A DNA stretch of 62,968 nt, the filler included, from Hyphochytrium catenoides (lineage: Eukaryota > Protista > Hyphochytriomycota), in the NCBI GenBank assembly GCA_900088475.1. It is 9 parts of 9 records of this genome, joined end to end, with 100 filler letters (N's around TTAATTAATTAA, not from the genome) between each part and the next. Parts side by side here need not be neighbours in the genome. Positions count along the whole stretch, not along the records: positions 1 to 28,767 come from FLMG01003536.1; 8 more parts are not named here. The stretch is one strand, 5' to 3'. Both the position numbers and the translations under genes were made by a program. The notes under the pieces are model-generated. The model had not been told where the DNA came from. It saw only the letters and a program-made list of their open reading frames with translations, and did no database searches. Shown one piece after another: positions 1-28,767 of this stretch. Position 1 is the first letter of the stretch, and every line of letters starts with the position of its first letter.

Positions 1-1198
1 AGACAGAGCACCTTCTCTCTCTCTCACTCTCTTGAGATCTGCTTCAGTCTCTCCTCTTGAGATCTACTGCATCAGATTCTCATACTACAACCGTCGTTGA
101 ACTTATTTATTAGATTCTTCCCATTCTTTCATCTTCATCTTCGTCGTCCCGTTCTTGACGCTCTCTGTCTTTTGGGCTATCGAAGAAAAAGTGGATGACC
201 GTAGCCTTTCCCGGAAAAGCATCAATGCACTCTCCAGCCATTGCGCTGCAGCAACAGTAGCTGTCGCGTTTGCAAGCGGGCTATTTCAGATCATGAGGTG
301 GCACTAATAAATACTAAGGGATATCTGATTCCACATTAACCTCACAAGGTCTGTGTATGCCTTGCAAAGATTGTGAGCGACAACTTGTCTTCTAGGCTGA
401 CTTAGTCCCTACTTATGCATGCAGATAGATGTGTTTGGAACCTCAACAGTCGTCTCCGAGACTTGCAAGCTGGAGGCAAACATGTATCAGTTGGGCTTAA
501 CAAGGAGGAGGAATTCATATCCCCAGCAGAAGTACTTGCAGGATTTGGAGACTAGTCTGGTGATGCGGTTTGTCAAGACACATCTCTATGAAAACTCGTT
601 AGGTTCTGAAGGCAACCTGCATCTCCAACGAGACGACGAACAGAATTAGCACCGAAGAGTCAGTAGTAGTACTAGCGTGGGTGCTTGTTCTGTCAGCAAA
701 TATTCTCAGCGGCACCATCAGTTACATCGAGCAAGACGACACATCGTCAAGCCGAAATAGTTCTTCTCATAACAGATAAAAGTCTTATTGAGAAGCTGAC
801 GTTCATTTGTGCTTCTCATCTCGGCGGTTAAGCGAGGGATTGCGGCGCAAGAACTTTGGCGTGCAAGGTTCCGGAGGCAGTACTCTATGCTAACTGTTTA
901 GTCTTTATGTCCCACCATCAGGTGGTGGCCTTCCATCTCCACCTTATTTGGATGTAGAAGAGCCATCGTGACGCAGAGGTGGTTGCTTATGAGCTAGAGA
1001 TCACGTTAAGCTCTGTCTCAGAGTGCTAAAGCCTTACTTAGTGAGGTATGGTAAAGTGCTGATCCGACTGGACGGAGCTAAAGGAAAGAGGAAAGCAAGT
1101 AAGCAAAGGAAGAGCTTTATTGATCAAGGCAAGAGAGTATTCATATTGATTCTTTTATTAGAAGATCAAGGCAAGAGAGTACTGATCAAGTTGTGGCC

Positions 1199-3832
1199 TT
1201 ACCCTTCCATTAACACCTTAAGGGAAGGTAGAGTTGTCACTCGCTGAATAAGGAGATCTTCATGCCGAACAATATGGCTTATGCGGAAATATAAGAAGAA
1301 CCCCACATAGCTGTGAGCAACTCCAGCCACAAAAAAGAAGAGAAACATCGAGGCGTTCACGAAGGTTGGGTCGCTGGAAAGCCTATTCCACTGGGGGCTG
1401 AGGGCGAACAAGAATATGCCTGCGCCCAAAAACATCATAGCGGCGCCACCACAGTACAGTACCCTCTGCAATAATCTGCAGTTGATGGACGAACCTTCAC
1501 TTTCAGGAATTTTTTTCTTAAGAAGCCCTCCCTTGTCCGTTTTATACAGCTGAGCCATTATGGCATAGTATGCATACCCAGTCCCTGTCAGCCAAAAGCC
1601 TGGGAAACTTGACGCCTTCACAGCCTTAAAAAACAGATCAAGGTTTTGTGCGACCATACGCTCCTCGTGCTGTGGAGAAAACTTGTATTTTTGAATCTGC
1701 TGCTTCATGCTGTCAATGGTCAAAGATTTGGTCTTGGATATCGTCCTGTTGTTCCAGTATGCTTGCGAGGTTAATGACTGTATAGTCTTGCTGGTCATCA
1801 CCAGGATATGGAATGCATGATGCTGGGGCTCCAAGAAGATCTGACACAGCAGCTGCCGAGTGTAGATCTCATACCACAGCGTTTTGTACCTTGATCCCCG
1901 ATCTTTCTTATGAATTGGAAGTTTCCCGGACACTATTGCCAGGACTTGTGAGCTAAAATCCATTAGTTTGTCAAACTTGTTCTGAGCGATGTATATTTTC
2001 TTCAAGAGTTCCAGAGAGTCACGTATATCACAATGAGCTGGACTTAAGATGCGAAACTGTGACAGCAAGCACTCCTCGAGCAGGATCTGTGCTCTTTCTA
2101 TGTTGCTAATCTTGTCGTCATTATCATTGTCTGATCTCTCCGGAGTGACACCACTGTGCCACTTTTGCTGCTCAGTAGACTGACCATTGTTGATCAAAGG
2201 AAGTTCTTCCACGGTGCTAACGCGGTCAAGGACGTCCGCCTGGAAAAACAGGGTCCTCTTGATGCTATCGAACCACCCACCAGTCTTCTTTTTGCCAAAC
2301 CGAACATAGTCCGTGTAGTACAGAAGGGCCTGAACAAATTTTGCATAGAGCTGTCGTGGATGGTTTTCATCCTCGAAATAGCCGTCGGACTTCTTACATC
2401 CAAATCTTTTGACAATCCTCTGGACCTCAAGCTTCAGTTCTGCGATCTGTCTACCGTCAAGATTTTCAGATCTAATCATGCACTCGAAATAGAAGAGGGC
2501 TACTTGGAGGGCAACTGGATGGTCCTTCAATTCACTTCGAGCACAGTCTTCCCGCAACTTTTCAAAGCCTTCTTTGGCTTTTTGGTAAGCTCCCATTCTC
2601 ATCAGGGTCCACCAGTATTCAGTCTTTATCCGAATTTGCCATTGCTGCAGAGAGCCGTCTTGGATCATAGCCAAGAAGTCTCCAGCGTCATCATGAGATG
2701 TCGATTCAGCCGCTACCAGAAAGATCTTGCTTGCCACATCAAGGAGTTCTGCCTGAATCATTTTAAAGTGGTGATCTGAGCTGCCAATACTTCCCAGCGC
2801 GCTCAGAAGGAAAGCACCGACGAGTCGCTTAATATACCATGAATTGCCCTCTTTGACGCGCTCCAAAAGGTTGTTTAAAGCTGTGACGTTAGTCTGGAGC
2901 GTGACAAAACTGGCATCGCAGAAAATAGCGTCACGGAACCTGATTTCAGTTCCAAAAAGCTGTTTTCTGGCCCATTCGTATCTGTCATGAGAGCTTTTCT
3001 TTTTCTGTTCCTCATCATCTGACAGGCGCGCACAAAGTTCTTGACCACCGGCTTTCAATACCACCATGAACACGCCATCTTCGTTTAAAGGAAGGCTAAA
3101 CGTGGTAAATTTAAGCTTGTCGAGGGCGGGAGCCTCCTTTAGAAGATAGTAGCCGCGGAGCTGCAGTTGTAGCTCGCAAACATGTCCGGTACCGACGTGG
3201 CGAAGATTGATCTTAACATCCCTGTAGCCACCAGGGATAGGCTCCGTTGAACCGAGAGTGTTCTTCACACGGACCAAAACAAATGAATCTGCAACGACCC
3301 TCTGCGAATCCCGGATGGTAGCTCGTACAATTTCGTTGAATGATACTAGCAGATCCTCAGGTTTCTCGAAGAGTAATGTGGCACGGACGATGTCTATGAC
3401 TTGTGCGAAATCACCTTTGTAGTCGTTCTGTGCCTTTTGGGTTATTCTTGCTCCTTGTTTTAAAGGACCGTAAATGAGGGTACAATCTTTATTCCGCTGC
3501 CTGGACTGCTCCAAGAGAAAGGCGTCGAATGAGACCTTCACTTGACGGGCATCAAGAATCAGAGGATCGGCGGATTGAGTCTTATCGTGATGATAATGGC
3601 GGATCTTCTTCTCGGTAACCCTCATATCACCCAGCATTCCGCTACCATCAATTGCTGCTTTAACGGTCCCATGGTAAAGTGCATCGTAGTTCGTTGCGTC
3701 CGCAATGGTCTTGCTTACAATGTCTAAGGTTGTCTCCAGAAGACTTATGTAGCTGCTGATGTCTTTCTGATCGCCCAACGACGGCGGAAGGGCCTGGGTA
3801 AGGTGTCCGATTGGGACAGTCTTGACAGACAT
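1199..3832 (-). CDS. RelA/SpoT (small alarmone synthetase-like) nucleotidyltransferase domain + TPR-like helical region + C-terminal transmembrane helices, 877 aa, intronless
   Basis: Synthetase motifs occur in the expected order: GPLKQGARITQKAQNDY (Syn1), VIDIVRAT (Syn2), RVKN, GGYRDVKIN (Syn3), HVCELQL (Syn4), then HDRYE. TPR-like segments follow (DHPVALQ, NHPRQLY, LLEECLLSQFRILSPAHCDIRDSLELLKKIY). Two strongly hydrophobic segments lie near the C-terminus (VLYCGGAAMMFLGAGIFLFAL; SMFLFFFVAGVAHSYVGFFLYF). Confidence 0.8.
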   Translation of the reverse strand: MSVKTVPIGHLTQALPPSLGDQKDISSYISLLETTLDIVSKTIADATNYDALYHGTVKAAIDGSGMLGDMRVTEKKIRHYHHDKTQSADPLILDARQVKVSFDAFLLEQSRQRNKDCTLIYGPLKQGARITQKAQNDYKGDFAQVIDIVRATLLFEKPEDLLVSFNEIVRATIRDSQRVVADSFVLVRVKNTLGSTEPIPGGYRDVKINLRHVGTGHVCELQLQLRGYYLLKEAPALDKLKFTTFSLPLNEDGVFMVVLKAGGQELCARLSDDEEQKKKSSHDRYEWARKQLFGTEIRFRDAIFCDASFVTLQTNVTALNNLLERVKEGNSWYIKRLVGAFLLSALGSIGSSDHHFKMIQAELLDVASKIFLVAAESTSHDDAGDFLAMIQDGSLQQWQIRIKTEYWWTLMRMGAYQKAKEGFEKLREDCARSELKDHPVALQVALFYFECMIRSENLDGRQIAELKLEVQRIVKRFGCKKSDGYFEDENHPRQLYAKFVQALLYYTDYVRFGKKKTGGWFDSIKRTLFFQADVLDRVSTVEELPLINNGQSTEQQKWHSGVTPERSDNDNDDKISNIERAQILLEECLLSQFRILSPAHCDIRDSLELLKKIYIAQNKFDKLMDFSSQVLAIVSGKLPIHKKDRGSRYKTLWYEIYTRQLLCQIFLEPQHHAFHILVMTSKTIQSLTSQAYWNNRTISKTKSLTIDSMKQQIQKYKFSPQHEERMVAQNLDLFFKAVKASSFPGFWLTGTGYAYYAIMAQLYKTDKGGLLKKKIPESEGSSINCRLLQRVLYCGGAAMMFLGAGIFLFALSPQWNRLSSDPTFVNASMFLFFFVAGVAHSYVGFFLYFRISHIVRHEDLLIQRVTTLPSLKVLMEG

Positions 3833-4379
3833 TGTTCCTTCTTGGCTGAGACTTCGCTGTCTAGAGGCAACTTGTTAAGTGAGAGGAGAGCTGGCAAGTA
3901 GACTACCGTGTGATGGTGTTAGCATATATTCCATAACGTTCTAGCAAGTGATGTAAGTTCATCTTCTCCGCGACTCCACCTGGGTACTGCAGCTTCCACG
4001 TGTTTCTTGATGGCATTGGAAACATCAACCCCCATGCAACAACTAAGGTAGACACAGTGCTGATGGTGAGACGATAGACTGTAGTAGAGCTCCAGATAAT
4101 GCCACAGAATCACTAAGGTTATGGTGGGACTGATGTTTCATTCAAAAACTATGTACTCCGTAATAACCCTCTAGTGTTCAGACAGCAGGCTGCGAGTGAG
4201 ATGGACCTTTCACTATTAACTAGTTGTTTATTGTGACCGCATGTTCCTTCGTGGTAGATGACACTGAGGCACGGGTGAGACCGCTTTGGTCTCTCCTTTT
4301 TTGTAAGGACTCGAAGGATGCGGTAACTCCCTTGAACGGCCTCAGGCCGCCTCACATCAGTGAGGAGATACCCACGAGA

Positions 4380-6944: not shown

Positions 6945-8399
6945 TTACGGTTGAGTTGGCATTACCTTAGTCACAGCTTTAGCTGTTTCGATATTGAAAT
7001 TCTCCCGCCGCCGTGAGACGGATGTCGGGGTTAGTTGTTTCGCAAAATGTGCACAGATTTTGCACTCTCTATGTGAAAGTTCACTGCTTTGCGAGGAGGG
7101 AAAGTGTTTCAGTGGTGCGCTCTCTCGCTGGAGAAGCTTGATCAGGAGGACACGCTGATTGGGGTTCTCACGGTTGCGGAACACGTAGTAGACCCAAATG
7201 TATCTGAATATAAGGACAAAGGCTGCCAGGTAACGTGCCGTAGCGTCGAAGGCACTACTTCGCCGGTAGTAGGCATCCCCAACAATCTCAGCGTCGCATA
7301 AAGAGCAGGACTCACGTCTTGACAGACCTAGACAGTTGTCTGCGACGCAAGCTTGGCGGTCCAAACCGTAGAGATAGCTCGAAATGACGACGAGTACTCC
7401 CTGTATGATGAGGAACAAGAAGCAGCCAACGAAGTGTATATCGAATATAGTCATATAAGGAACCTTTGGCAAGGCGTCCTGGGAGACAAACTTGAACGCC
7501 ACTTCTGTCAGGAACACGTTGACTAGCACGCTTAGGCGGTCGGAAAGGTCACTCAGGTCGATGAAAAAGGTTGCCAAACTCAAAACGTCTGCGACAGCTA
7601 GAAGTCCCCCAAGGTTGATGACTACACTCTTCCACTCTCGCCTTAGGCCAATGTGAACATAATACATATCCAGGTCGTCATCCTTCTCTTGCCCTATCAC
7701 TTCTGGCGCTCGTTCTCCAGCTACTTCGGGAAAATCTTGCGTGAGAATACCCGTTTCCTTCCATCGATGGGGCACGGGGTGGCCTATGATGTGATCATTG
7801 ACATCCCATTCTGGGAGTAAGTCAGCATCAGTGGACAGAGCGTGACCTTTCCTATCACGATATGTGCCCATCGGCAGCTGACAAAACTCTACGGTAGGCC
7901 GATCCGTTGATCCGAAAACCGCAGCCACGCGAACTCTCAGCCGTATCGTTAGCACTTGGACATCAAAGGGGTAACCATAGACCAAATACGGCTGCGTTAA
8001 AGTCAAGCGACGTCTAATGGTTGCTGTACACCGCGTTTGCTCTCCATTTTTACCTGTCTTCACTTTCATGTTCTCCGCAATCATTGCTATAACAGATGCC
8101 TCCGTTTCGTGGCCACTAGTGCTCAAGTCATTGAGAACCTCAACAAATGGGATGAAGTGGTCCCGCCATTGTTCTTCCGTTGATGGAAATCCCTCATCCT
8201 TCCTATTGACCACCGAGTCGTCTATCCAATCGAGCATTAGTAGAAAATCATCGCAATTGAAGGTTTGGTTGACGACATCAACGTTGGAAATGCAGGACAC
8301 CTTGACGGTGACCGTAACCTTTGGCGCGGTGATCTTCCCTTTCCGGCCACCGTCGCGATCTTTGTAGTATTCAACATATCGTCTACCCAGCAGACTCAT
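6945..8399 (-). CDS. Cys-less (Pro-loop) pentameric ligand-gated ion channel subunit, 484 aa, apparently intronless
   Basis: Beta1-2 VTVKVSCISNVDVVNQTFNCDDFLLMLDWID, Pro-loop YPFDVQVLTI, LPEWDV, pre-M1 Arg (GLRR), M1, M2 SDRLSVLVNVFLTEVAFKF, M2-M3 LPKVPYMTIFD, M3 and M4. Confidence 0.92.
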   Translation of the reverse strand: MSLLGRRYVEYYKDRDGGRKGKITAPKVTVTVKVSCISNVDVVNQTFNCDDFLLMLDWIDDSVVNRKDEGFPSTEEQWRDHFIPFVEVLNDLSTSGHETEASVIAMIAENMKVKTGKNGEQTRCTATIRRRLTLTQPYLVYGYPFDVQVLTIRLRVRVAAVFGSTDRPTVEFCQLPMGTYRDRKGHALSTDADLLPEWDVNDHIIGHPVPHRWKETGILTQDFPEVAGERAPEVIGQEKDDDLDMYYVHIGLRREWKSVVINLGGLLAVADVLSLATFFIDLSDLSDRLSVLVNVFLTEVAFKFVSQDALPKVPYMTIFDIHFVGCFLFLIIQGVLVVISSYLYGLDRQACVADNCLGLSRRESCSLCDAEIVGDAYYRRSSAFDATARYLAAFVLIFRYIWVYYVFRNRENPNQRVLLIKLLQRESAPLKHFPSSQSSELSHRECKICAHFAKQLTPTSVSRRRENFNIETAKAVTKVMPTQP

Positions 8400-11879: not shown

Positions 11880-12300
11880 ATCTGAAGCTTGAGTCTGTTC
11901 AGCAGTTGGACCCCGCTCTAGCTTGCATGATTGAGCGCGATGATGATGATGGTCTCCTATCATTATTGCGGAAGAGTTCAACTATGATTCTTCTTCCTTT
12001 TTTCCGACATTGATGGCGAGGGTGGCGGAGGAGAACGCGTTGTAGAGTACAGGGCTTTGTAGCTCTCGTCTCTTCTTCTTTTCTCTTCTTCTTCTACTCC
12101 GTCTTCTTCTTCTTCCTCTTCTTCTTCTTTTTCTCGTTCTTAGCTTCATCTTTTACTTCTTCTTTTACGTCGGGTGAATGATGGAGCTGCTTCTTCCTCT
12201 TTTTCCCTTTTCTGGCCTACTAGTACTTTTCGCTCTCGTTCTTCTTGTTCGTCATAGTATAATTTTCATATCTTCTTCTCTAAAGTAGTCTACTAGTCAC
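11880..12300 (+). mobile_element. Degenerate non-LTR 3' end, family A copy
   Basis: LKLESVQQLDPALACMIERDDDD followed by aactatgattcttcttcc and a CTT-rich tail. Similar to 12530-12830. Confidence 0.6.
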
Positions 12301-14095: not shown

Positions 14096-16644
14096 TTATT
14101 TGCACTGAGACGGGACATCAAACGCATCGTTGTAAACGCGAGGTTTGGCAGAAGCACCCAGTCCGCGCTTGGCGAAGCCTTTCCAGATCTCACATTGGTT
14201 AGCACCATCGTTGTTGGCCTGGTCAGCCTGTAAGATCGCGTCTCTGGCTTGTACGAGGGTTGGATTGCAAGGCTGAAGCTTCATGCCGTCCATGACGAGC
14301 TGCATCATCACCGTGTTGCCCTTGCCACTGGCGGCATCGTCCTTGTATCGCGGCGTGAAGCCAAGCTTATCAATGAGGTTCCAGTACACTTCCCAAAGCA
14401 TCACAGCCCAGACTTCACCGATCTTATGGACTTCCTTGTACTCCTTAAGGTAGGAATACGTGTGCGGGTTCTTGTTCATGTCCGTCGTATAGACGTAGCG
14501 GCGAATGCCGTTAGGGTTGCCAAAGACGTAGACACCCGTGGGGAAGTCAGAGTTCCTGTTGTTGGACGTTTTGGTTCGCAGAGCTTGTCCATAGAAGTCG
14601 CCCCACCCTTCGCCCATGCCGCCAGACTCAAGGCTGTTGAGACAGTTCGAGTTGTCAGCACCGCCGGTCAATCGTGTGGAGAGGCCGTGAGTAAACTCAT
14701 GAGTGATAATGTCGTTAGAGATCGCGCCATCGCGAAGGGCGCCGGGCTTTGCTACATTCCCTGTTAAGTGGTAGAAAGAAGAGCTATTAGGACAGATAGA
14801 CCAGATCCTATAGACCATGAGAACCAAAAGGAGCCAGCAACGGCCGTTAGAAGAAGGAGGCAGGGGAGGAATGTCGTTCAACCATCAAGGTAAGAAGAAG
14901 AGAGACAGCAATCGTCGTTGGGATCAAAGATGACCTAGCATCAAGAACGCTGATGCTAACACACGCTACGGAGAGGACAGTAAGAGGAGATGACGACAAG
15001 GCCTTCGTGAGAGGACGAGAGAATGGAACAATGCTCAAGGGCAACAACGACAGCTTTAGAAGAAGTGGCGGTAGTCAGTAGGGAAACTCACAAAGATACA
15101 TCCTCATTCTTGGGCTTCGGCCATCAGGCGGCGTGGCAAAGTTGGCGTTGTTCATCCCTGAGGAGTCCTGGCACGTCGCGACCAAGGGGTCATTGCTTCT
15201 TCCTCCGGCCTTGTTGACTTTCTGAAAGTTCCCGGCAGCGTCTGTGAAGCCGTAGGCGTAGTAGATATCGTGGATGGAGTTGGCAACGTAGAACATGTTG
15301 GTGACAGCAAAGTCGTGATAGTCCTTAGGATTCATGTCCTCACTGAAAGTGAACTCAAAGTCAAAGTTAGTTGCCGTGGCACCCGTGCCGCCGGCGGTAG
15401 CAACGACGTTGTTTCCCTTGGTAGAGCTCACGGGACCTGAGCCTGCGTCATGCCACCCGCGGGAAGAGTACTTCAGATCTTGCGGGTCCGTCAGGACAGT
15501 GGGCTTGCCATCAGACAAGTCCATGAACCCAATCGGGAGGACCTTGTACTTCACGCCTGTCAACCCTGGTTGGAGTCTTCGTCGAAGAGTGGTTCCCGTG
15601 TTAGTAGCCCCCGTCAGGTTTGCCGTTGATTCCTTCTTCCATGCTTGGTCATTCAGCTGCTTTGTAGAGAGAAATGATGGCTGTTCACCGTTGGCAACAG
15701 CAGCAGGGAGCTCAAGCTCGAAAGTACCCGTCTGGACACCGTCTTCGGTAGAAAATAGAGGTACATCAGAGTTGCGGCTCCAGTCAGAGACAGCAACAGT
15801 TCTTCCATCTTGGGCACTGACGAAGACATTGAGCCTATCGCGCAGAAGTTCAGTAGCAACAAGAGGATTCAACAATGCGTTAGTCTGATGGATGAAGAGG
15901 TTTCAGGGCCGGCGCAGAAGATACTTACCAGTTGTTAACCATCTCGATCTCCAGACTCCAGACAAGCTCCAGAGCTCCCTCAGATGTCTGATAGTACTTT
16001 AGATTAGCATTCACTTCCTGACCAAGCGCGAAGCTGGCGCCGGTGATGGTCCACTGCACGGGAACATCATTCACAACCTTCGACCCTGGAGTCGCTTTGA
16101 GCTCAGGCTTAGAAACGGGTAGATTGGAAGACCTTGCGAAGCTCTCCAGAGCGGAAACAGCAGAGATCTTCGGGCGCCCACCAGCAGTTTGAATTGTTGC
16201 GTGATGTGCTGCCACAGTGCTGGCGTAGGTAAGGACCTTATTGTTCTTGTCTACGGTCACCTTCACGCCGCCATTCTCCACATCGAGGCCATCCTTAGTC
16301 TGGACCATGTACATATGATAGAGGCCGTTGTGCTCATCGCGAAATTCCCTAAGCACTTGTACCTCAGGCGTTGCGGATTCGGTAGTGGAGCTCTCAGATA
16401 GTTTTTGCTTGGCAAAGTTAAGTGCGGTCTCGGCCTGGGTGGCACCTGTTCCAGCAATATCAAGACCAGTAGTAAAGTCAGCATGGGGCTGCCAGTAGGA
16501 AGGGGCAGTGACAGTCACTTTGCTCGTCGACGGGTCCACAGCTAATGATGAAGACGGGAATGTAGCGCCCAGCATCATCAAAGCTCCAATGATGCTAACG
16601 GCGCATCTCCGCCGCTGCTGTCGGGATGAAGACTTACGAGCCAT
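14096..16644 (-). CDS. Secreted fungalysin (M36) zinc metalloprotease, 3 exons (introns 15835-15928, 14761-15091)
   Basis: A signal-like hydrophobic stretch (AVSIIGALMMLGATF) and an FTP-type propeptide (HNGLYHMYMVQTKDGLDVENG) precede TKGNNV, YGFTDAAGNFQ, NNANFATPPDG, HEFTHG (HExxH), GGMGEGWGD, EVHKIGEVW, KLQPCNP and FAKRGLG. Splices give NNW|LNVFV and MYLW|NVAK in frame. Confidence 0.95.
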
Positions 16645-17329
16645 TGCAGAGAGAATGAGAGTTCGGGCGGTTGTCGCCGAGTGGACTTGGAAGTCACTGT
16701 TGAAAATGAAGAATGACAAGCTACTGCCAGGCCTTCATCCCAATGAAGCACCAGTCGGCCTTCAAATCTGATCTCTCCTTCAATAGGGAACTGAAGACGG
16801 ACAGCAAAGAAGTTAGGCCAAGAGACCTTTTCATTCTATTTTCCGGTTCACTCTATACGGCTGCATGGGACCATGAATTTTGAAGGCGATAGCCCAGCAG
16901 CGAGAAAATAGAAGACGGCGCTCGGAATAACTCTCTGAAGATAGATGATGATGGTGATGAGAACAAGGCATGGAGAACGAACTGAGAATGAGCGCATAGC
17001 TTCGCTGGATAACTCCAGGACAAGACAATGGCGACATCTCCGAGAAGGTGGTCAAACAGAGCCTTGATAAAGAAACGAAGAGAGGAGAAGGGAAGGGGGA
17101 GCAAGTTCGCGTCATGGCGCCTTCCCTAGATCTATGCCGTCTTTGTTTATCGTCTGCACAAAGGAACAGGGAAGAAGATGTGAACCTTCGGTCATATCTT
17201 CACTATTATTAGCAACAGAGTAGGAGAAGGAGTTTGGAAGACTTCAGCGGTAGGATAGGACGGCTTTGGTCATACCACCAATGTAGAAGGAAGGACGTAA
17301 AGAAGAAAGAATGGGAAGGGAAAGAGCGT

Positions 17330-20750: not shown

Positions 20751-20999
20751 GATGAGGTGGGGTGGGGGGGAAAATAGAGAGCAGAAAGAGAAAGTGTATT
20801 CGCTTCTGTCTCTGTAGGTTTTCGTGACTGATTGGAGGAGACCCAAGAGCGAGAAATCAGGAGGGAAGGAACAAAACTACAGAGGAAGATCAAGGAGAGA
20901 GAGCGAAAGAGAGAGAAAGAGAAAAAAAAGAGAGAGAGAGAGAGAGAGACAGAGAGGAGAGGAGAGAGAGAGAAGAGAGAAAGACAGCACGGGGCTCAA

Positions 21000-21673
21000 T
21001 CACATGTTGTAGCTACTATCAGGGTTAAGATAGTGGATGATCTTCTCCCAGCATTCTTGAAGCAAACCCTTCTTGCTCCTCTCTCCCCCCTTCGACTGTC
21101 TCAACTCCACGAGGAGGAGGAGGAGAAAGATAACCTGGTTGAACTGTCTACTATATAACGAGGCTCTCTCTTTCCTCCATGGCTTCTCGGCCTTCAACAG
21201 GAGAGAGAGACACTCTCTCTTTCTCTCCGCCTGTGCTATGTCTCTCGCTGTCTCTCCCCGGTAGTTAACATCATCATGAATCCGTGCTCCTGCCCTTAGT
21301 AAACGCCTCAGTATCTTAGTGTTTCCTCTGTAGGCCGCCCACATCAGCGGAGTCGCTAATAATATATGAGGAGGAAAGGATGTCGAAGAAGAAGAGACGG
21401 ACGAAGAGAGAAGAGAAGAACAGCGAGTGGAGGGCGCGAGAGAGAGGTTTGGCGCCGCTCCTGCCTTCAGAAGCAAAGATGTTATCTCCTCCGAGTTCTT
21501 CTCTGCAGCGATGATAAGGGGAGAGATAGAGTTAAAAGAGTAAGACACGTTCACGTCTGCGCCGGCCTCGAGAAGGAGAGAGATGAAAGAGGGACTTCTC
21601 TCTCTCTCTATCGCTTCCAATAGCGCTGTCCATCCACCTTCTTCTTCTGCTCTATCATCGATCACATTGGTCC
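21000..21673 (-). pseudogene. Ankyrin-repeat gene, duplicated 3' exon only (no homologue of the copy-2 first exon)
   Basis: GWTALLEA, LLLEAGADVN, SPLIIAA, TPLMWAAYRGNTKILRRLLRAGA, GETARDIA. Near-identical to 26684-27297; similarity stops inside the preceding intron. Confidence 0.7.
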
Positions 21674-22889
21674 CTACTAAGAGTGAGAAGAAGACGTTAG
21701 GGATGTGCGAGAGCAATAAGGAGACAACAATAAGGAGACAGCAACGAGAGACATCATGGCCAGCGATAGAGCCCAGGAATAAGGTTATATTAGACTGCAT
21801 CTCGACGATGTTGGAGCCGAAGGTGCGCAGGATATTAAGGCTGTTCGTTATCCCAAAGAACTCTTTAAATTTCGCACTGGTATTGGTGGAGAGGTAGCTC
21901 GCGGACCCATCTTCTATCAGCTGTACAAGAATGCTATCTCCAGAGTCAGAAGAATCGGCATATAGAAGAGAGAAGGATGATTTGATGTGATGGTTCTTTA
22001 GTATATTAAGGCCTACTACGGACTAACTCGTTTCTTCTCTCTGCCTAATATAATAACAACCCACCACCATAAGTAATTTGCAGCCGCCATCCAAATAAAG
22101 CGTCTCTATCCTCGCTCTCTCTTGCTTCGCGCTCACGCTCTTGCTCTATCTCTCCCATCCGCAACCCTCGCCACTGCTCACAGGTCAAGAAGATGACCAG
22201 GAGGAGCGGAGCGGAGTAGTGATGATGATGATGATGGTGACACGCACTCTTTGAGCGAGGATAAAGAATATAAAATAACTACAACCATCGAGCTTTTGGA
22301 CGGTGATGACCTCGCTTTGCAAGAAGCGTATGACTTTTACATCTCTTTCTTCTGTGGTCATCAATCCTCTTGCCTTTTTATCCTGTCCAATTCAACTCTT
22401 TGTCTGAACCTTCAGTACTCCTCCGTGACAGAGTCTATAACTCATCCGTTCACTGCCGCCTTATTATTGAACACAATCAAAGTGGACAACAGCAGTAGTA
22501 TAAACCTGTTTATCGGGTACACTCCTTGTTTCTTCACGCTAGAAAATGTGAATTTGTGTACATGCAGCTCTGCAACAAGCTACTGTAGCAATATAAGGCC
22601 CTGTTGTTGTGGTGCTTGTCAGAAGAAGAACGGCATTGTTTGGCCAGCAGATTTTCAAGTCAAAGTGCCGCGGGTTATGAGAAGCTTTGACGGAATAAAT
22701 ATATAGTAGTAGACTGGCTGGTTGGCAGATTGTAGGAGCAAGTCTAAAGGTGACGTCTGAGTTTGTCGCAAGGAACAAACTCATTGTTATTCCTAGCTTT
22801 CAATAATAAGAAGGGGCAGCAGTAGTCTTTCTTCTGCTGGTGCTGTGGACATACATTCGTTTCGTAGTGACAACATCATCTTCTCACCG

Positions 22890-24704: not shown

Positions 24705-26430
24705 CGGACATTGTCTATGGTTTGCCTGAGCCTAGGAGCATAAGCCATAGCTAATGCTACAGCGCCTCATCATCAACAAATGTAGCAGCCTTTCAATCAT
24801 AGTTCGTTAGTAGGAGCAGCGCTACTCAATCTGGCAGTCAGAGAGGTCATTCATCCAGCGGTTGAGGAACAATTGACAGGTTGATTATGCTTGAAACGGA
24901 TGGATATAAAGGAGGAGGAGGATATCGACCAGAACTTCCCACAAGTCCTTCTCATCAGCCAAAGAAGAGAGAAGATCATAGAAGATCTCTGTAGACTGGA
25001 AAGTGAATAAACAGCTGGTCTGTCCTATCAATATGGCGCGCCGCCTGCCTTTGTCTCTAAGATATAATCGCGTCTCTCCACATCCTTTCTCTTATACCAG
25101 GAGTACGGTCGACTCCTCCGTCTTCAACCCTTTCCCAGCTCTTCTTCTCCCCTTCTTGCTCCGTGAACATTGAACTTTTCTCTAACTAATAGCTCTTCGA
25201 GATGTTGTTCCTTCTTTCATTATCTACATTTGGACGAGAGAAAGAAGAAAGAAGCAAGAAGAAAGAAAGAACAAGAGACAAGAAGAACTGCGAAGCTGTT
25301 ATAAAAGTTAATAACTCTCTCCTCCTCTCTTCCATCATCAGTTATTATCAGAAGACAAGGAAGGATCATAGTCCTTCTGTTCCACAGCATTAACAATAGG
25401 AAAAGGATGACAAAGGGAAGAAGGAAAAGGCGTCATTAAGAAGGTCAATCATCACACTCGACCAGCCAACAACTGGAGAGAAGAAATGCGCTTCAAAGTT
25501 TGAACTGATTATCTTCCTGAATGGCCAAGGAGACTCAGGTGGAATGAAGGCCTGAAGCCATCATGAGGCGATACCAAAGATACCGAGAAGCATCAAGCGA
25601 AGAACGAAATCATTGAAACTTCGCAAGCCGCCGCTCCACACAGTCAACCAAAAGGAGATGATGCAGAGCCCCTCATTTTTTAAGGAATCCTACGTAGTGG
25701 GATAAGCTGACAGCCTGCGTACAGCCTTATAGCGAGCCTCATACTTCGTCACTTTGTCAGACAAGAGACCCTCATAGTAGCCAACATGGACGGCTACATC
25801 GGGAAGAGTTCTTCTGAAGTGCAGCGAGGATCCGTGTGCTGCTGAGAACAAAGTCCTTCATGAGGGAGATCGTCCATAAGAAAAGCAGGGACAATCTGTG
25901 AACGACCCATGCTGAGCTGCTTCGCTGTTGCCACAAGCACTCAGGAGTATTGATGGTGCTTTCTGCCTACCTCTGACATGAAAAACTCTTGGCGGGGCTA
26001 TCGACACGGCTCATTCAACCCAGAGAGACTATGGATTAGAGCCATTCAAAACAACTGGTGTTAGGGCACGATCAACTTCCTCTTCTTTCTTCCTCTTCTT
26101 TCTTGACAGTCCGTCTACAGAGGACTGCCTCCACACCTCTCTCAGGAGACATTGCAACAATGCGAAGATGATGCTTTCCAGGCGACTCGCAACCTCCGAG
26201 GGATGGCCAGAGTGCTCCTCATGATGCCCTTGTCCGCTTTCTGTCCATGGAAGATAGTTCGCTATTTTCCCTCGGCTTTTCATTTCCCTCTTTTGTTACG
26301 CCTGCTGGGGAGAGCTTGGCTGACTAGCAGTTGGGTTGGAAGCTCTTGGTCGGTGCAGTGCAGAGAGCAGGAGGAGATAATGTAGCTTATCGGCGATAAC
26401 ATTCCACTGTGAAGAAGGTGCCAGAGAGAG
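24705..26430 (-). mobile_element. Degenerate LINE-type reverse transcriptase pseudogene, copy 2
   Basis: Colinear homologue of 18610-20750. It retains VRGRQKAPS, AFLMDDL (YxDD-like catalytic motif, ~25865-25890) and TDQLFIHFPVYRDL. Confidence 0.55.
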
Positions 26431-26659
26431 GGAGGTAGGGGCAGGGGGGAAAGTAGAGAGCAGAAAGAGAAAGGGTATTCGCTCTTGTCTCTGTAGGTTT
26501 TCGTGACTTGGAGGAGACCAAGAGGGAGAAATCAGGAGGGAAGGAAGAAGACCACAGAGGAAGACCAAGGAGAGAGAGCGAAAGAGAGAGAAAGAGAAAA
26601 AGAGAGAGAGAGAGAGAGGAGNNNNNNNNNNNNNNNNNNNNNNNNNNNNNNNNNNNNNN

Positions 26660-28228
26660 NNNNNNNNNNNNNNNNNNNNNNNGATAGTGGATGATCTTCT
26701 CCCAGCATTCTTGAGGCAAACCCTTGCTCTCTCCGCCCTTCGACTGTCTCAACTCTACGACGAGGAGGAGGAAGATAACCTGGTTGAACTGTCTACTATA
26801 TAACGAGGCTCTCTCTTTCCTCCATGGCTTCTCGGCCTCTAACAGGAGAGAGAGACACTCTCTCTTTCTCTCCGCCAGTGCTATGTCTCTCGCTGTCTCT
26901 CCCCTGTAGTTAACGTCATGGATCCGTGCTCCTGCCCTTAGTAAACGCCTCAGTATCTTAGTGTTCCCTCTATAGGCTGCCCACATCAGCGGAGTCGCTA
27001 ATATATGAGGAGGAAAGGATGTCGAAGAGGAAGAGACGGACGAAGAGAGAGAAGAACAGCGAGTGGAGGGAGAGAGAGAGAGGTTTGGCGCCGCTCCTGC
27101 CTTCAGAAGCNNNNNNNNNNNNNNNNNNNNNNNNNNNNNNNNNNNNNNNNNNNNNNNNNNNNNNNNNNNNNNNNNNNNNNNNNNCACGTCTGCGCCAGCC
27201 TCGAGAAGGAGAGAGATGAAAGAGGGACTTCTCTCTCTCTCTATCGCTTCCAATAGCGCTGTCCATCCGTCTTCTGCTCTATGGTTCACCTTAGTCCCTA
27301 AGAGAGACGTTAGGGATGTGCGGAGCATTAAGGAGACAGCAAAAAGAGACATAGGCAGCGATGGTGGAGAATCTACCTGCGTAGATGGACGGAGGTGGAG
27401 AGAATAGAAGAGGGAAAGGGGGAACGGAGAAAGAGAGAAAGCTGGACATCGAGGGGGTCCTAAAAATAGATGAAGAGAGAGAGAGAGAGAGACTCCGGGA
27501 AGGGAAGAGAAGAGAGAAATGGAGCGAACTAGATCGAGAGAAGAAGGATGAAGAAGCAAATGGGTGGGCGAGGGAAGGCAGGAGAGATAGAGAGAAAGTA
27601 ACCGAGAAAGGAAGAGAAAAATGTAGAGGGAGTAAGAGAGGGAGAAGGAGAGACGGAAGGATGGGCGAGTCGGTGAGAGAGAGGGGGAGAGAAGGGAGAA
27701 AAGAGAGAAAAGCAAGAATGACGGCAGTGTGTGTATGGTGTGCGTGTGTGTCTCATAGAGAGAGGGGAGACAGAGAGACACAGAGAGGGAAAGAGAGAGA
27801 GAGAAAGAGAGAAACACAGAGAGAGAGAGAGCAAGCACACCTGACATGCGGAGAAGCTCCTTCGCAAGCTCCTCTTTCCCATCTCTAATAGCGTACATTA
27901 GCGCCGACCAGCCGCCTAACAGGACCTTCACGTCCAACTGACTCCTTACCATCGGCCTCAGAACCTTAACATCCGACTGAGAAATCGCCTGAATGATAAG
28001 CTTTCTTAGTGCTGAAGGGCTCTGTTGATAGCCGATGACGCTGGTAGAGCTCTTCAGATCGAGAGAAGAGAGAAGATAGTGAAACCATGAGCCTAGAGAG
28101 AGGAGAAGAAGAGAGACACGGGTCTCGGCGGTAGAAGAGGGAGAAGAGGAGACTTTGTTGTCTATGTTGTCTCCTCTCTCGCTCCTGGACCGCGAGGTCG
28201 CTGCTGCCCACCGCAGCCACTGACTCAT
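26660..28228 (-). CDS. Ankyrin-repeat protein, 2 exons (intron 27298-27840); stop codon probably falls in an N gap
   Basis: Exon 1 ends GGWSALMYAIRDGKEELAKELLRMS and splices in frame to GTKVNHRAEDGWTALLEA...TPLMWAAYRG...GETARDIA. The end coordinate is estimated from copy 1. Confidence 0.85.
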
Positions 28229-28391
28229 TCTGCAGATTCTGAAGCTCTGGACAAGCTCTTGAAGGTTGGGACAGCCATGAAGCTGTTACGATGGAGATAG
28301 CGGAATGTCGCCGTGGCACTGGGAGAGCGAATAGAGCATAAAGCACCGTACAGTTAGTGATGTTGAAGAGGAGCGGGAGAGAGAAAGAGAG

Positions 28392-28428
<37 letters not shown>

Positions 28429-28767
28429 GTGTGAGCGAGAGAAAGCGAGAGAGAAAGAGAGAGAGAGAGAGCAGTGAGGAAGAGAGTCAAGATGGCATAC
28501 TGAAGCTGCCTCTGCTGCTTGAATAGCTGGAGAAAGAACGAAGATACAGAGCCAGGGAGACAGAAGAGAGAGGCGAGGGTTGGCTGACTGAGTGAAGAGA
28601 TTGATGAATAGGAGAGAGGCAGAGTTAATAGTGATGGAGATACTCAGAGAGGAACGAAAGCAGACTATTCGAGCGCGAGCGACGCAGAGACAGAGGGTAA
28701 GAAAGAGGAGGAGAGAGTGAGTATTTGAGAGAGAGAGGGAAAAGAGGGAGAGAGAAAGAGAGAAAGA

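Follow-up and report, generated by a model that had tools for sequence, protein, structure and literature searches.

A predicted membrane-tethered, repeat-bearing synthetase of the Tas1/Apk-like RelA/SpoT branch in Hyphochytrium catenoides

Tas1/Apk1, an effector of the Pseudomonas aeruginosa type VI secretion system (PDB 6ox6), and the MuF-fused Apk2 have been shown experimentally to be (p)ppApp-synthetase toxins (PMC10083569; PMC8118318), and signalling roles for (p)ppApp have been proposed in bacteria (PMC10083569). Here we describe a gene of Hyphochytrium catenoides, an open reading frame (ORF) at positions 1199-3832 (minus strand) of a joined stretch of 62,968 nucleotides, filler included, hereafter the window, whose product carries a domain of the same branch of the RelA/SpoT homologue (RSH) synthetases. 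Tas1 was both the best profile match and the best structural match of this domain. The family of the H. catenoides protein and Tas1 have in common the motif 1 variant P-[IL]-K-x3-R-x3-K, instead of R-x-K-x3-S-x3-K; the protein itself and Tas1 also share D-x2-R, G-Y, E-x-Q and [GS]-H-x2-Y-E-x-[AW]-R, and in both an insert precedes the last of these motifs at the corresponding place. Apk2 is a MuF-fused phage/Bacteroides toxin, and the bacterial members of the family that we retrieved likewise show MuF and other polymorphic-toxin architectures. In contrast to Tas1/Apk, however, the H. catenoides gene is a eukaryotic nuclear gene with the synthetase domain at the N-terminal rather than the C-terminal end, and no PAAR or MuF delivery module was found in its product by Pfam. 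It is instead fused to helical, tetratricopeptide-repeat (TPR)-like repeats and a transmembrane (TM) hairpin, its G-loop reads G-G-Y-R-D where Tas1 has G-Y-S-G, and in the domain tree it lies on a eukaryote-type branch apart from the bacterial-toxin-type sequences (SH-aLRT 98). The immunity genes Tis1 and Aph1 belong to the Tas1/Apk toxins.

Small alarmone synthetases (SAS) and toxic SAS (toxSAS), such as RelQ/RelP, SaSAS (8vx3), FaRel and CapRel, resemble our protein in having a single synthetase domain of the same fold without an HD hydrolase, and CapRel further joins a toxin domain and a sensor domain with autoinhibitory function into a single chain, which is the layout we propose here. Nevertheless, our protein remains below the PF04607 threshold, its family profile reaches these enzymes at E 3e-4 (SaSAS) or worse, and it differs from CapRel and toxSAS in having no antitoxin and no pseudo-zinc-finger domain and in not matching the PADLOC models; the likeness to CapRel that we found is in the fold of the RSH domain only. 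Fungal NOD-like receptors (NLRs) with RelA_SpoT effector domains were described in 2014 by Dyrka et al., and an immune or non-self-recognition role for them is a proposal (PMC4986451). Like our protein they are eukaryotic, with an N-terminal RSH domain that is cytosolic (as predicted for ours), and belong to a repeat-bearing family (TPR, WD or ANK) with lineage-specific expansion; however, they have a central NACHT/NB-ARC NTPase and a match to PF04607, both missing in our protein, which is moreover membrane-anchored and encoded in a stramenopile-type genome. We therefore rejected an NLR proper, there being no STAND/NACHT/NB-ARC NTPase in the protein.

Divergent SAS (divRel) of eukaryotes were catalogued by Atkinson et al. 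in 2011 from Thalassiosira, Phaeodactylum, Dictyostelium and ascomycetes, with horizontal gene transfer presumed, genomes that may be without an RSH hydrolase, and signalling roles as a matter of speculation (PMC3153485). That survey was made before Tas1 and is without Tas1 affinity, TPR/LRR fusions or membrane anchoring (PMC3153485). Both divRel and the present family are synthetase-only, the named relatives of our protein are largely diatoms, and judged by the description it probably belongs with the divRel enzymes. Given the reports of 2011 and 2014, the gene is less unprecedented than the initial annotation of the window implied when it set it against long plastid enzymes and bacterial single-domain synthetases. 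Plant and algal long RSH enzymes (RSH1-4, CRSH) make (p)ppGpp, are targeted to plastids and, besides matching PF04607, carry HD/TGS/ACT or EF-hand domains. They share with our protein just a eukaryotic host and the RSH synthetase fold, and we rejected a plastid long RSH since the protein has no such Pfam domains and no N-terminal leader and the genome no light-harvesting (LHC) genes. As far as we know, experiments on eukaryotic RSH proteins have characterised just two kinds, plastid (p)ppGpp enzymes and the Mesh1 hydrolase, and we know of no cytosolic eukaryotic RSH synthetase with a demonstrated product or role. In the open-access literature we found no paper on a Tas1-like RSH with a TPR/LRR fusion in protists, or on a membrane-anchored version.

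Catalytic domain and its fold

The ORF has exactly the coordinates given in the initial annotation, lies on the minus strand and encodes 877 amino acids (aa). Its synthetase domain and motifs are located in the window as follows.

1199..3832, minus strand: entire ORF without introns, 877 aa and a stop codon, starting at the first ATG in frame
2963..3580, minus strand: Tas1/Apk-like RelA/SpoT-synthetase domain (predicted nucleotide 3'-pyrophosphokinase), aa ~85-290, from HMMER, family profile, AlphaFold2 (AF2), Foldseek and Atlas
3434..3469, minus strand: motif 1, G-P-L-K125-x3-R129-x3-K133; K125 invariant, R129 and K133 at least 90% conserved
3383..3394, minus strand: motif 2, D147-I-V-R150; D147 and R150 both invariant in 78 sequences
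3206..3232, minus strand: motif 3 (G-loop), G-G-Y203-R-D205-V-K207-I-N209; D205 invariant, G, Y and R at least 90% conserved
3167..3184, minus strand: motif 4, H217-V-C-E220-L-Q222; E220 invariant, Q222 at least 90% conserved
2966..2992, minus strand: motif 5 (C-terminal helix), S-H-D-R-Y285-E-W-A-R289; Y285 and R289 at least 90% conserved

Searched exhaustively with HMMER, 1.84 billion cluster representatives yielded 306 proteins at E<=1e-3, the best at 9e-16; among the 150 of these 306 matches that were listed, nearly all fell on aa ~85-260. A family alignment and profile were built from 78 domains of the HMMER matches. All four synthetase motifs that had been annotated as intact were found, on invariant or near-invariant columns of this alignment (GPLK at residues 122-125, GGYRD at 201-205): K125, D147, R150, D205 and E220 were invariant, and R129, K133, G202, Y203, R204, Q222, Y285 and R289 were conserved in at least 90% of the sequences. 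When compared with PDB sequences, the family profile matched Tas1 at E=7.1e-21, over residues 242-420 of the Tas1 toxin domain, the next best being the exported Streptomyces SAS 8vx3 (SaSAS) at E=2.9e-4 and RelA/Rel at ~0.1.

Against Tas1, Rel and RelA, the conserved residues lined up with the K/K pair that binds the ATP phosphates, with the Asp that binds Mg2+, with the Tyr of the G-loop and with the E-x-Q. Motif 1 aligned with P-I-K-S-R-E-R-A-M-Q-K of Tas1, motif 2 with D-L-A-R of Tas1 and D-L-V-G-V-R of Rel/RelA, motif 3 with G-Y of Tas1 and Rel, and motif 4 with E-I-Q of Tas1 and E-V-Q of Rel. Motif 5, with its Tas1 counterpart G-H-K-Y-Y-E-D-W-R, was preceded by a poorly modelled insert of ~45 aa, where the predicted local distance difference test score (pLDDT) was low at domain residues 184-211. 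The roles of catalytic residues were taken over from what is known of RelSeq and RelQ. We thus assume that the basic residues of motif 1 bind the phosphates of ATP as in RSH enzymes, that motif 2 supplies the counterpart of the Mg2+-binding Asp of RSH together with the Arg next to it in the motif, that Y203 is the G-loop Tyr stacking on the acceptor and D205 an Asp specific to the family, and that E220 of motif 4 is the catalytic Glu in the E-x-Q motif of RSH enzymes.

The AF2 model, computed on the family alignment, had a pLDDT of ~79-96 in the core (domain residues 21-170). In a Foldseek search of this domain model against the PDB, all 50 of the 50 listed matches were RSH synthetases, with Tas1 first, followed by SAS1, CapRel, SaSAS, RelP and Rel; the CapRel structure 7ztb stood at rank 4 (E 9.8e-6). 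The structure search of the ESM-Atlas agreed, returning RelA_SpoT clusters. The RelA/SpoT nucleotidyltransferase fold, on which the initial annotation had made its claim depend, was thus recovered, and we regard the RSH-synthetase fold, as modelled, and the intact catalytic motifs, as read from the alignment, as established.

In agreement with the annotation, Pfam returned no HD, TGS or ACT domain in the protein at E<=1, nor an EF-hand. Among 5.8 billion proteins searched with a word index, none matched the full-length query and one matched when the domain only was the query. Some members of the HMMER family reached just 23 bits, compared with the 27-bit cut-off of PF04607.

Repeat region, membrane anchor and relatives

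Downstream of the synthetase domain, the protein continues into a helical middle region and ends in a predicted membrane anchor.

1493..2935, minus strand: middle region, aa ~300-780, predicted as all-helical and carrying degenerate TPR_12-like units, from comparison with paralogue C1721, hhalign and AF2
1913..2104, minus strand: best-supported TPR_12-like unit, aa 577-640, from HMMER repeat matches in the proteins P0015 and P0098
1394..1462, minus strand: predicted TM helix 1, aa 791-813, Kyte-Doolittle 19-residue mean up to 1.96
1286..1354, minus strand: predicted TM helix 2, aa 827-849, Kyte-Doolittle 19-residue mean up to 1.92
1202..1285, minus strand: short basic tail, aa 850-877 (28 residues), predicted cytosolic from reading of the sequence

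TPR-like repeats had been annotated downstream of the synthetase motifs, and this claim was borne out for one stretch. Residues 577-640 matched seven repeat units of P0015, an NB-ARC-TPR_12 protein (E 1.3e-10), and five of P0098, a TIR-NB-ARC-TPR_12 protein (E 6.3e-6). Elsewhere the assignment did not hold up as well: Pfam found no TPR in the 877-aa protein, and hhalign of the middle region against the TPRs of paralogues aligned three units that contain H-P, with a probability of 18% (E 1.3e-3). Conservation of aa ~300-780 was observed only with paralogue C1721 (genome G000), at 35% identity, and AF2 on this two-sequence alignment gave an all-helical but unreliable model (pLDDT 42.6). Atlas features returned TPR clusters at 0.85 for the middle region, which we treat as a lead only. 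We describe the middle region accordingly as predicted helical, with degenerate TPR_12-like units of which one is well supported.

Two to three C-terminal TM segments had also been proposed. Two were clear, and the third was not seen. A K/R-rich stretch lies just before TM helix 1, and a 13-aa loop with an N-A-S sequon separates the two helices; in paralogue C1721 the same hairpin recurs with a Ser/Thr-rich loop of ~100 aa. No hydrophobic or leader-like N-terminus was present in the first 60 aa (Kyte-Doolittle, 19-residue mean), which agrees with the annotated lack of an obvious plastid-targeting leader. Since there is no signal peptide and basic residues flank the hairpin on both sides, the positive-inside rule predicts a cytosolic position for the enzyme, the repeats and the tail, and a lumenal or exterior one for the hairpin loop.

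Named relatives were found in Guillardia theta, Cylindrotheca closterium, a Bacillariaceae metagenome-assembled genome, Entomoneis, a pelagophyte and the choanoflagellate Acanthoeca, two of them under the automatic UniRef name "RelA/SpoT domain-containing protein". The Entomoneis relative is an MMETSP transcript, and this homologue is therefore expressed. In eukaryotic relatives the domain is joined to TPR_12, LRR, ubiquitin or multi-pass membrane regions; several relatives, P0003 and P0017 (both from Guillardia theta) and the unlabelled P0032, P0110, P0123 and P0147, have five to eight strongly hydrophobic segments beside the Tas1-like domain, and these multi-pass fusions are explained by no Pfam model. 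Other HMMER matches had bacterial or phage polymorphic-toxin architectures (Zeta-toxin giants, extracellular contractile injection system core plus calpain, MuF, and ddrB-ParB). Maximum-likelihood analysis of 83 domains gave a tree in which a branch with SH-aLRT 98 divided the sequences into groups of 15 and 68, the smaller including all four bacterial-type architectures and the larger all named eukaryotes together with the copies from the H. catenoides genome. Our protein was sister to C1721 (SH-aLRT 99). Because most rows of the tree are unlabelled metagenomic proteins, no direction of transfer can be claimed.

The genome assembly comprises 61.03 Mb in 4759 contigs and is that of a heterotrophic eukaryote, with multi-exon HSP70 genes and, on the synthetase contig itself, an M36 peptidase gene in three pieces; light-harvesting proteins and a silicon transporter were not found in it. 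It contains ~9-10 loci with the Tas1-like domain. Six of these have long open frames that keep all catalytic residues, and of the six, three bear strong TPR_12/TPR_10 arrays and a fourth a weak TPR_12 match. C1721 is 37% identical to our protein over aa 21-811 of the latter. The remaining loci look fragmented or degenerate, and C3544 contains stops. At locus C1106 (L024 3942-8240, plus strand), a 1432-aa open frame is broken by Ser/Leu and Glu/Arg low-complexity runs (CT/GA repeat frames) and has a degenerate G-loop, F-Y-P-H for G-Y-R-D, while the catalytic Glu and TPR-like units are kept; this may reflect unrecognised introns or decay. Scanning the whole draft genome, we detected neither a canonical PF04607 RSH nor an HD_4 hydrolase of the Mesh1/SAH/Aph1 type. 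This pattern of synthetase without hydrolase, with ~9-10 Tas1-like loci and no HD_4, echoes the one described for other eukaryotes (PMC3153485).

Proposed function and rival explanations

Taken together, the sequence, the models and the analogy with Tas1 lead us to propose, with moderate confidence, that the protein is a cytosol-facing, membrane-tethered nucleotide 3'-pyrophosphokinase of the Tas1/Apk-like RSH branch, regulated by its repeats and acting in conflict or cell death. In the scheme we have in mind, the TM hairpin would hold enzyme and repeats in the cytosol at the membrane surface, and the helical/TPR region would keep the enzyme inactive until a ligand or partner binds, by analogy with CapRel-type fused toxin-antitoxins and repeat-bearing immune sensors. 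Once active, the enzyme would transfer pyrophosphate from ATP to the 3'-OH of an acceptor, most likely AMP, ADP or ATP, yielding (p)ppApp as Tas1/Apk1 and Apk2 do, and the consumption of ATP would lead to arrest or death of the compartment. The product is probably (p)ppApp, since both characterised members of the nearest branch, Tas1/Apk1 and the MuF-fused Apk2, make it. A role in conflict or in an abortive-infection-like cell death is likewise probable, since the family is expanded in this genome with varied TPR tails, is fused to TPR or LRR in other protists, and is accompanied by no canonical (p)ppNpp hydrolase that we could find in the genome. The RelA_SpoT effector domains of fungal NLRs (PMC4986451) offer a precedent.

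The initial annotation had likened the combination of enzyme, repeat sensor and membrane anchor to an innate-immune receptor. The architecture itself was supported, as was kinship with toxins, and TPR_12, TPR_10 and LRR, which are fused to the domain in paralogues or in other protists, are repeat types of NLR-like receptors; the STAND/NACHT/NB-ARC module of such receptors was absent. The architecture thus fits a sensor-effector, and an immune role for it is hypothetical.

Several observations weigh against the proposed reading. When the single sequence was used as query, Tas1 (PDB 6ox6) was reached only at E 0.19; a Pfam scan of the 877-aa protein gave zero matches at E<=1, PF04607 RelA_SpoT included, the NCBIfam scan of the protein gave noise only, and PADLOC, with its CapRel models, matched neither the protein nor two paralogues. 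No STAND NTPase (NACHT/NB-ARC) was found by Pfam, nor a Walker A motif, [AG]-x4-G-K-[ST], anywhere in the protein. The G-loop has the invariant Asp in G-G-Y-R-D, where Tas1 reads G-Y-S-G and classical RSH G-Y-x-S, and because this Asp is specific to the family the acceptor specificity of Tas1 is not transferable to it. For most of the middle region the case for TPR identity is weak. The multi-pass relatives fit receptor-type signalling enzymes as well as immune effectors. We identified no immunity or hydrolase partner in the HD_4 scan of the genome, in which Tis1-like proteins were not searched for, and in a draft genome the missing HD_4 is not proof of absence; an immunity gene next to a toxin gene is not expected in a eukaryote. 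None of the RNA runs holds the locus, and nothing of it is contained in three small runs that carry this species label. Enzyme activity, product, ligand sensing, location and transcription are predictions of the scheme.

The multi-pass relatives also bear on another explanation, namely that the protein is a regulated second-messenger synthetase. The enzyme would then make a reversible signal, (p)ppApp, (p)ppGpp or another nucleotide, in association with the membrane, with the repeats serving as a regulatory or scaffolding module, comparable to membrane-bound nucleotide cyclases. The intact catalytic motifs are consistent with this, as is the recurrence of membrane association among eukaryotic relatives, the multi-pass Guillardia proteins included, and signalling has been speculated for eukaryotic divergent SAS (PMC3153485) and proposed for bacterial (p)ppApp (PMC10083569). 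However, the genome yielded no HD_4-type hydrolase that could reset such a signal, the nearest characterised relatives are toxins, and paralogues that multiply and vary in their TPR tails are more usual among conflict genes. We also know of no eukaryotic receptor for (p)ppApp-type nucleotides, and on balance we consider a second messenger rather unlikely.

The acceptor could also be RNA. Pyrophosphorylation of tRNA by RSH toxins has been described (bioRxiv 10.1101/2021.04.30.441581), and an enzyme acting like CapRel, FaRel2 or PhRel2 would modify the 3'-CCA acceptor end and thereby block translation. The rank of CapRel 7ztb in the Foldseek search speaks for such an activity, and so does the single-chain toxin and sensor of CapRel. 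Against this, no other solved RSH comes near Tas1 (7e-21) in the profile search, where CapRel is not seen at E<=10; the PADLOC CapRel models do not match, and conservation extends to the G-loop Tyr and the neighbouring motif used for nucleotide acceptors. A tRNA pyrophosphokinase is therefore improbable in our view. Most improbable of all is a non-functional or non-catalytic remnant, either an untranscribed gene or a pseudoenzyme scaffold, although no RNA run was found to hold the locus, the exact protein is not in a collection of 15 billion proteins, and some loci of the same genome look degenerate (C3544 with its stops, C1106 with its degenerate G-loop and low-complexity inserts). The frame of 877 codons has no stop and all invariant catalytic residues are kept. 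Moreover, the 37% identity to C1721 extends over nearly the whole length and includes conserved non-catalytic blocks and the conserved TM hairpin, which argues for purifying selection.

Returning to the proposed conflict enzyme, a broader and more tentative possibility, which we consider rather doubtful at present, is that protists (stramenopiles, cryptophytes and choanoflagellates) have a family of Tas1/Apk-like (p)ppApp synthetases in which the enzyme is coupled directly to TPR, LRR or membrane sensors, without an intervening STAND NTPase. In such a family (p)ppApp or ATP depletion would be an innate-immune or cell-death effector derived from bacterial polymorphic toxins, and the protein described here would be a sentinel at the membrane surface. 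The locus and its relatives tie the Tas1/Apk branch of (p)ppApp toxins to eukaryotic repeat-bearing, sensor-like proteins, and the expressible domain of ~240 aa offers a handle on whether eukaryotes make (p)ppApp-type nucleotides, in defence or in programmed death. Should the proposal be correct, a further bacterial conflict module would have been taken up by eukaryotes, beside TIR, cGAS/STING, gasdermin and NACHT, and an enzyme fused straight to repeats, without an NTPase switch, could be a receptor-effector. Should the product instead be a reversible signal, it would represent a new eukaryotic second-messenger system.

Gene model and neighbouring features

The open frame around the ORF spans 891 aa with zero internal stops, and the first ATG is preceded, 14 codons upstream, by a stop in the same frame. 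A contig assembled independently from a DNA run was identical to the window over positions 1000-4200, which supports the gene model weakly, since this run may be the assembly's own source. By exact look-up in the 15-billion-protein collection, the ORF, four paralogues and three neighbouring ORFs were not found. Antisense to the gene, a 207-aa ORF with a GTG start (2156-2779, plus strand) lies entirely within the conserved minus-strand frame. We rejected it as a gene since it lies within that ORF and is without support; it is most likely spurious. Rfam and tandem-repeat scans gave nothing relevant to the synthetase gene.

Bacterial contamination was rejected because the same contig carries a multi-exon M36 peptidase gene and has an even composition along its length. 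At 14096-16719 (minus strand), an ORF with an FTP propeptide motif is followed directly by two ORFs that each encode one half of an M36 fungalysin metallopeptidase (E 9e-10, 3e-47 and 1e-90, respectively). The three look like one gene with two short introns, and this multi-exon gene therefore supports a eukaryotic nuclear origin of the contig.

Two ORFs with ankyrin repeats were observed at 21000-21800 (minus strand, 266 aa) and 26387-28228 (minus strand, 613 aa). The 484-aa ORF at 6945-8399 (minus strand) gave a sub-threshold match to the transmembrane region of neurotransmitter-gated ion channels (E 0.007, 17 bits against a cut-off of 28) and may encode a divergent pentameric channel, or the match may be due to chance. 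The strong purine/pyrimidine skews in the composition profile are due to (GA)n and (TCT)n microsatellites, located at 20895-20984, 28377-28471 and 12071-12164.

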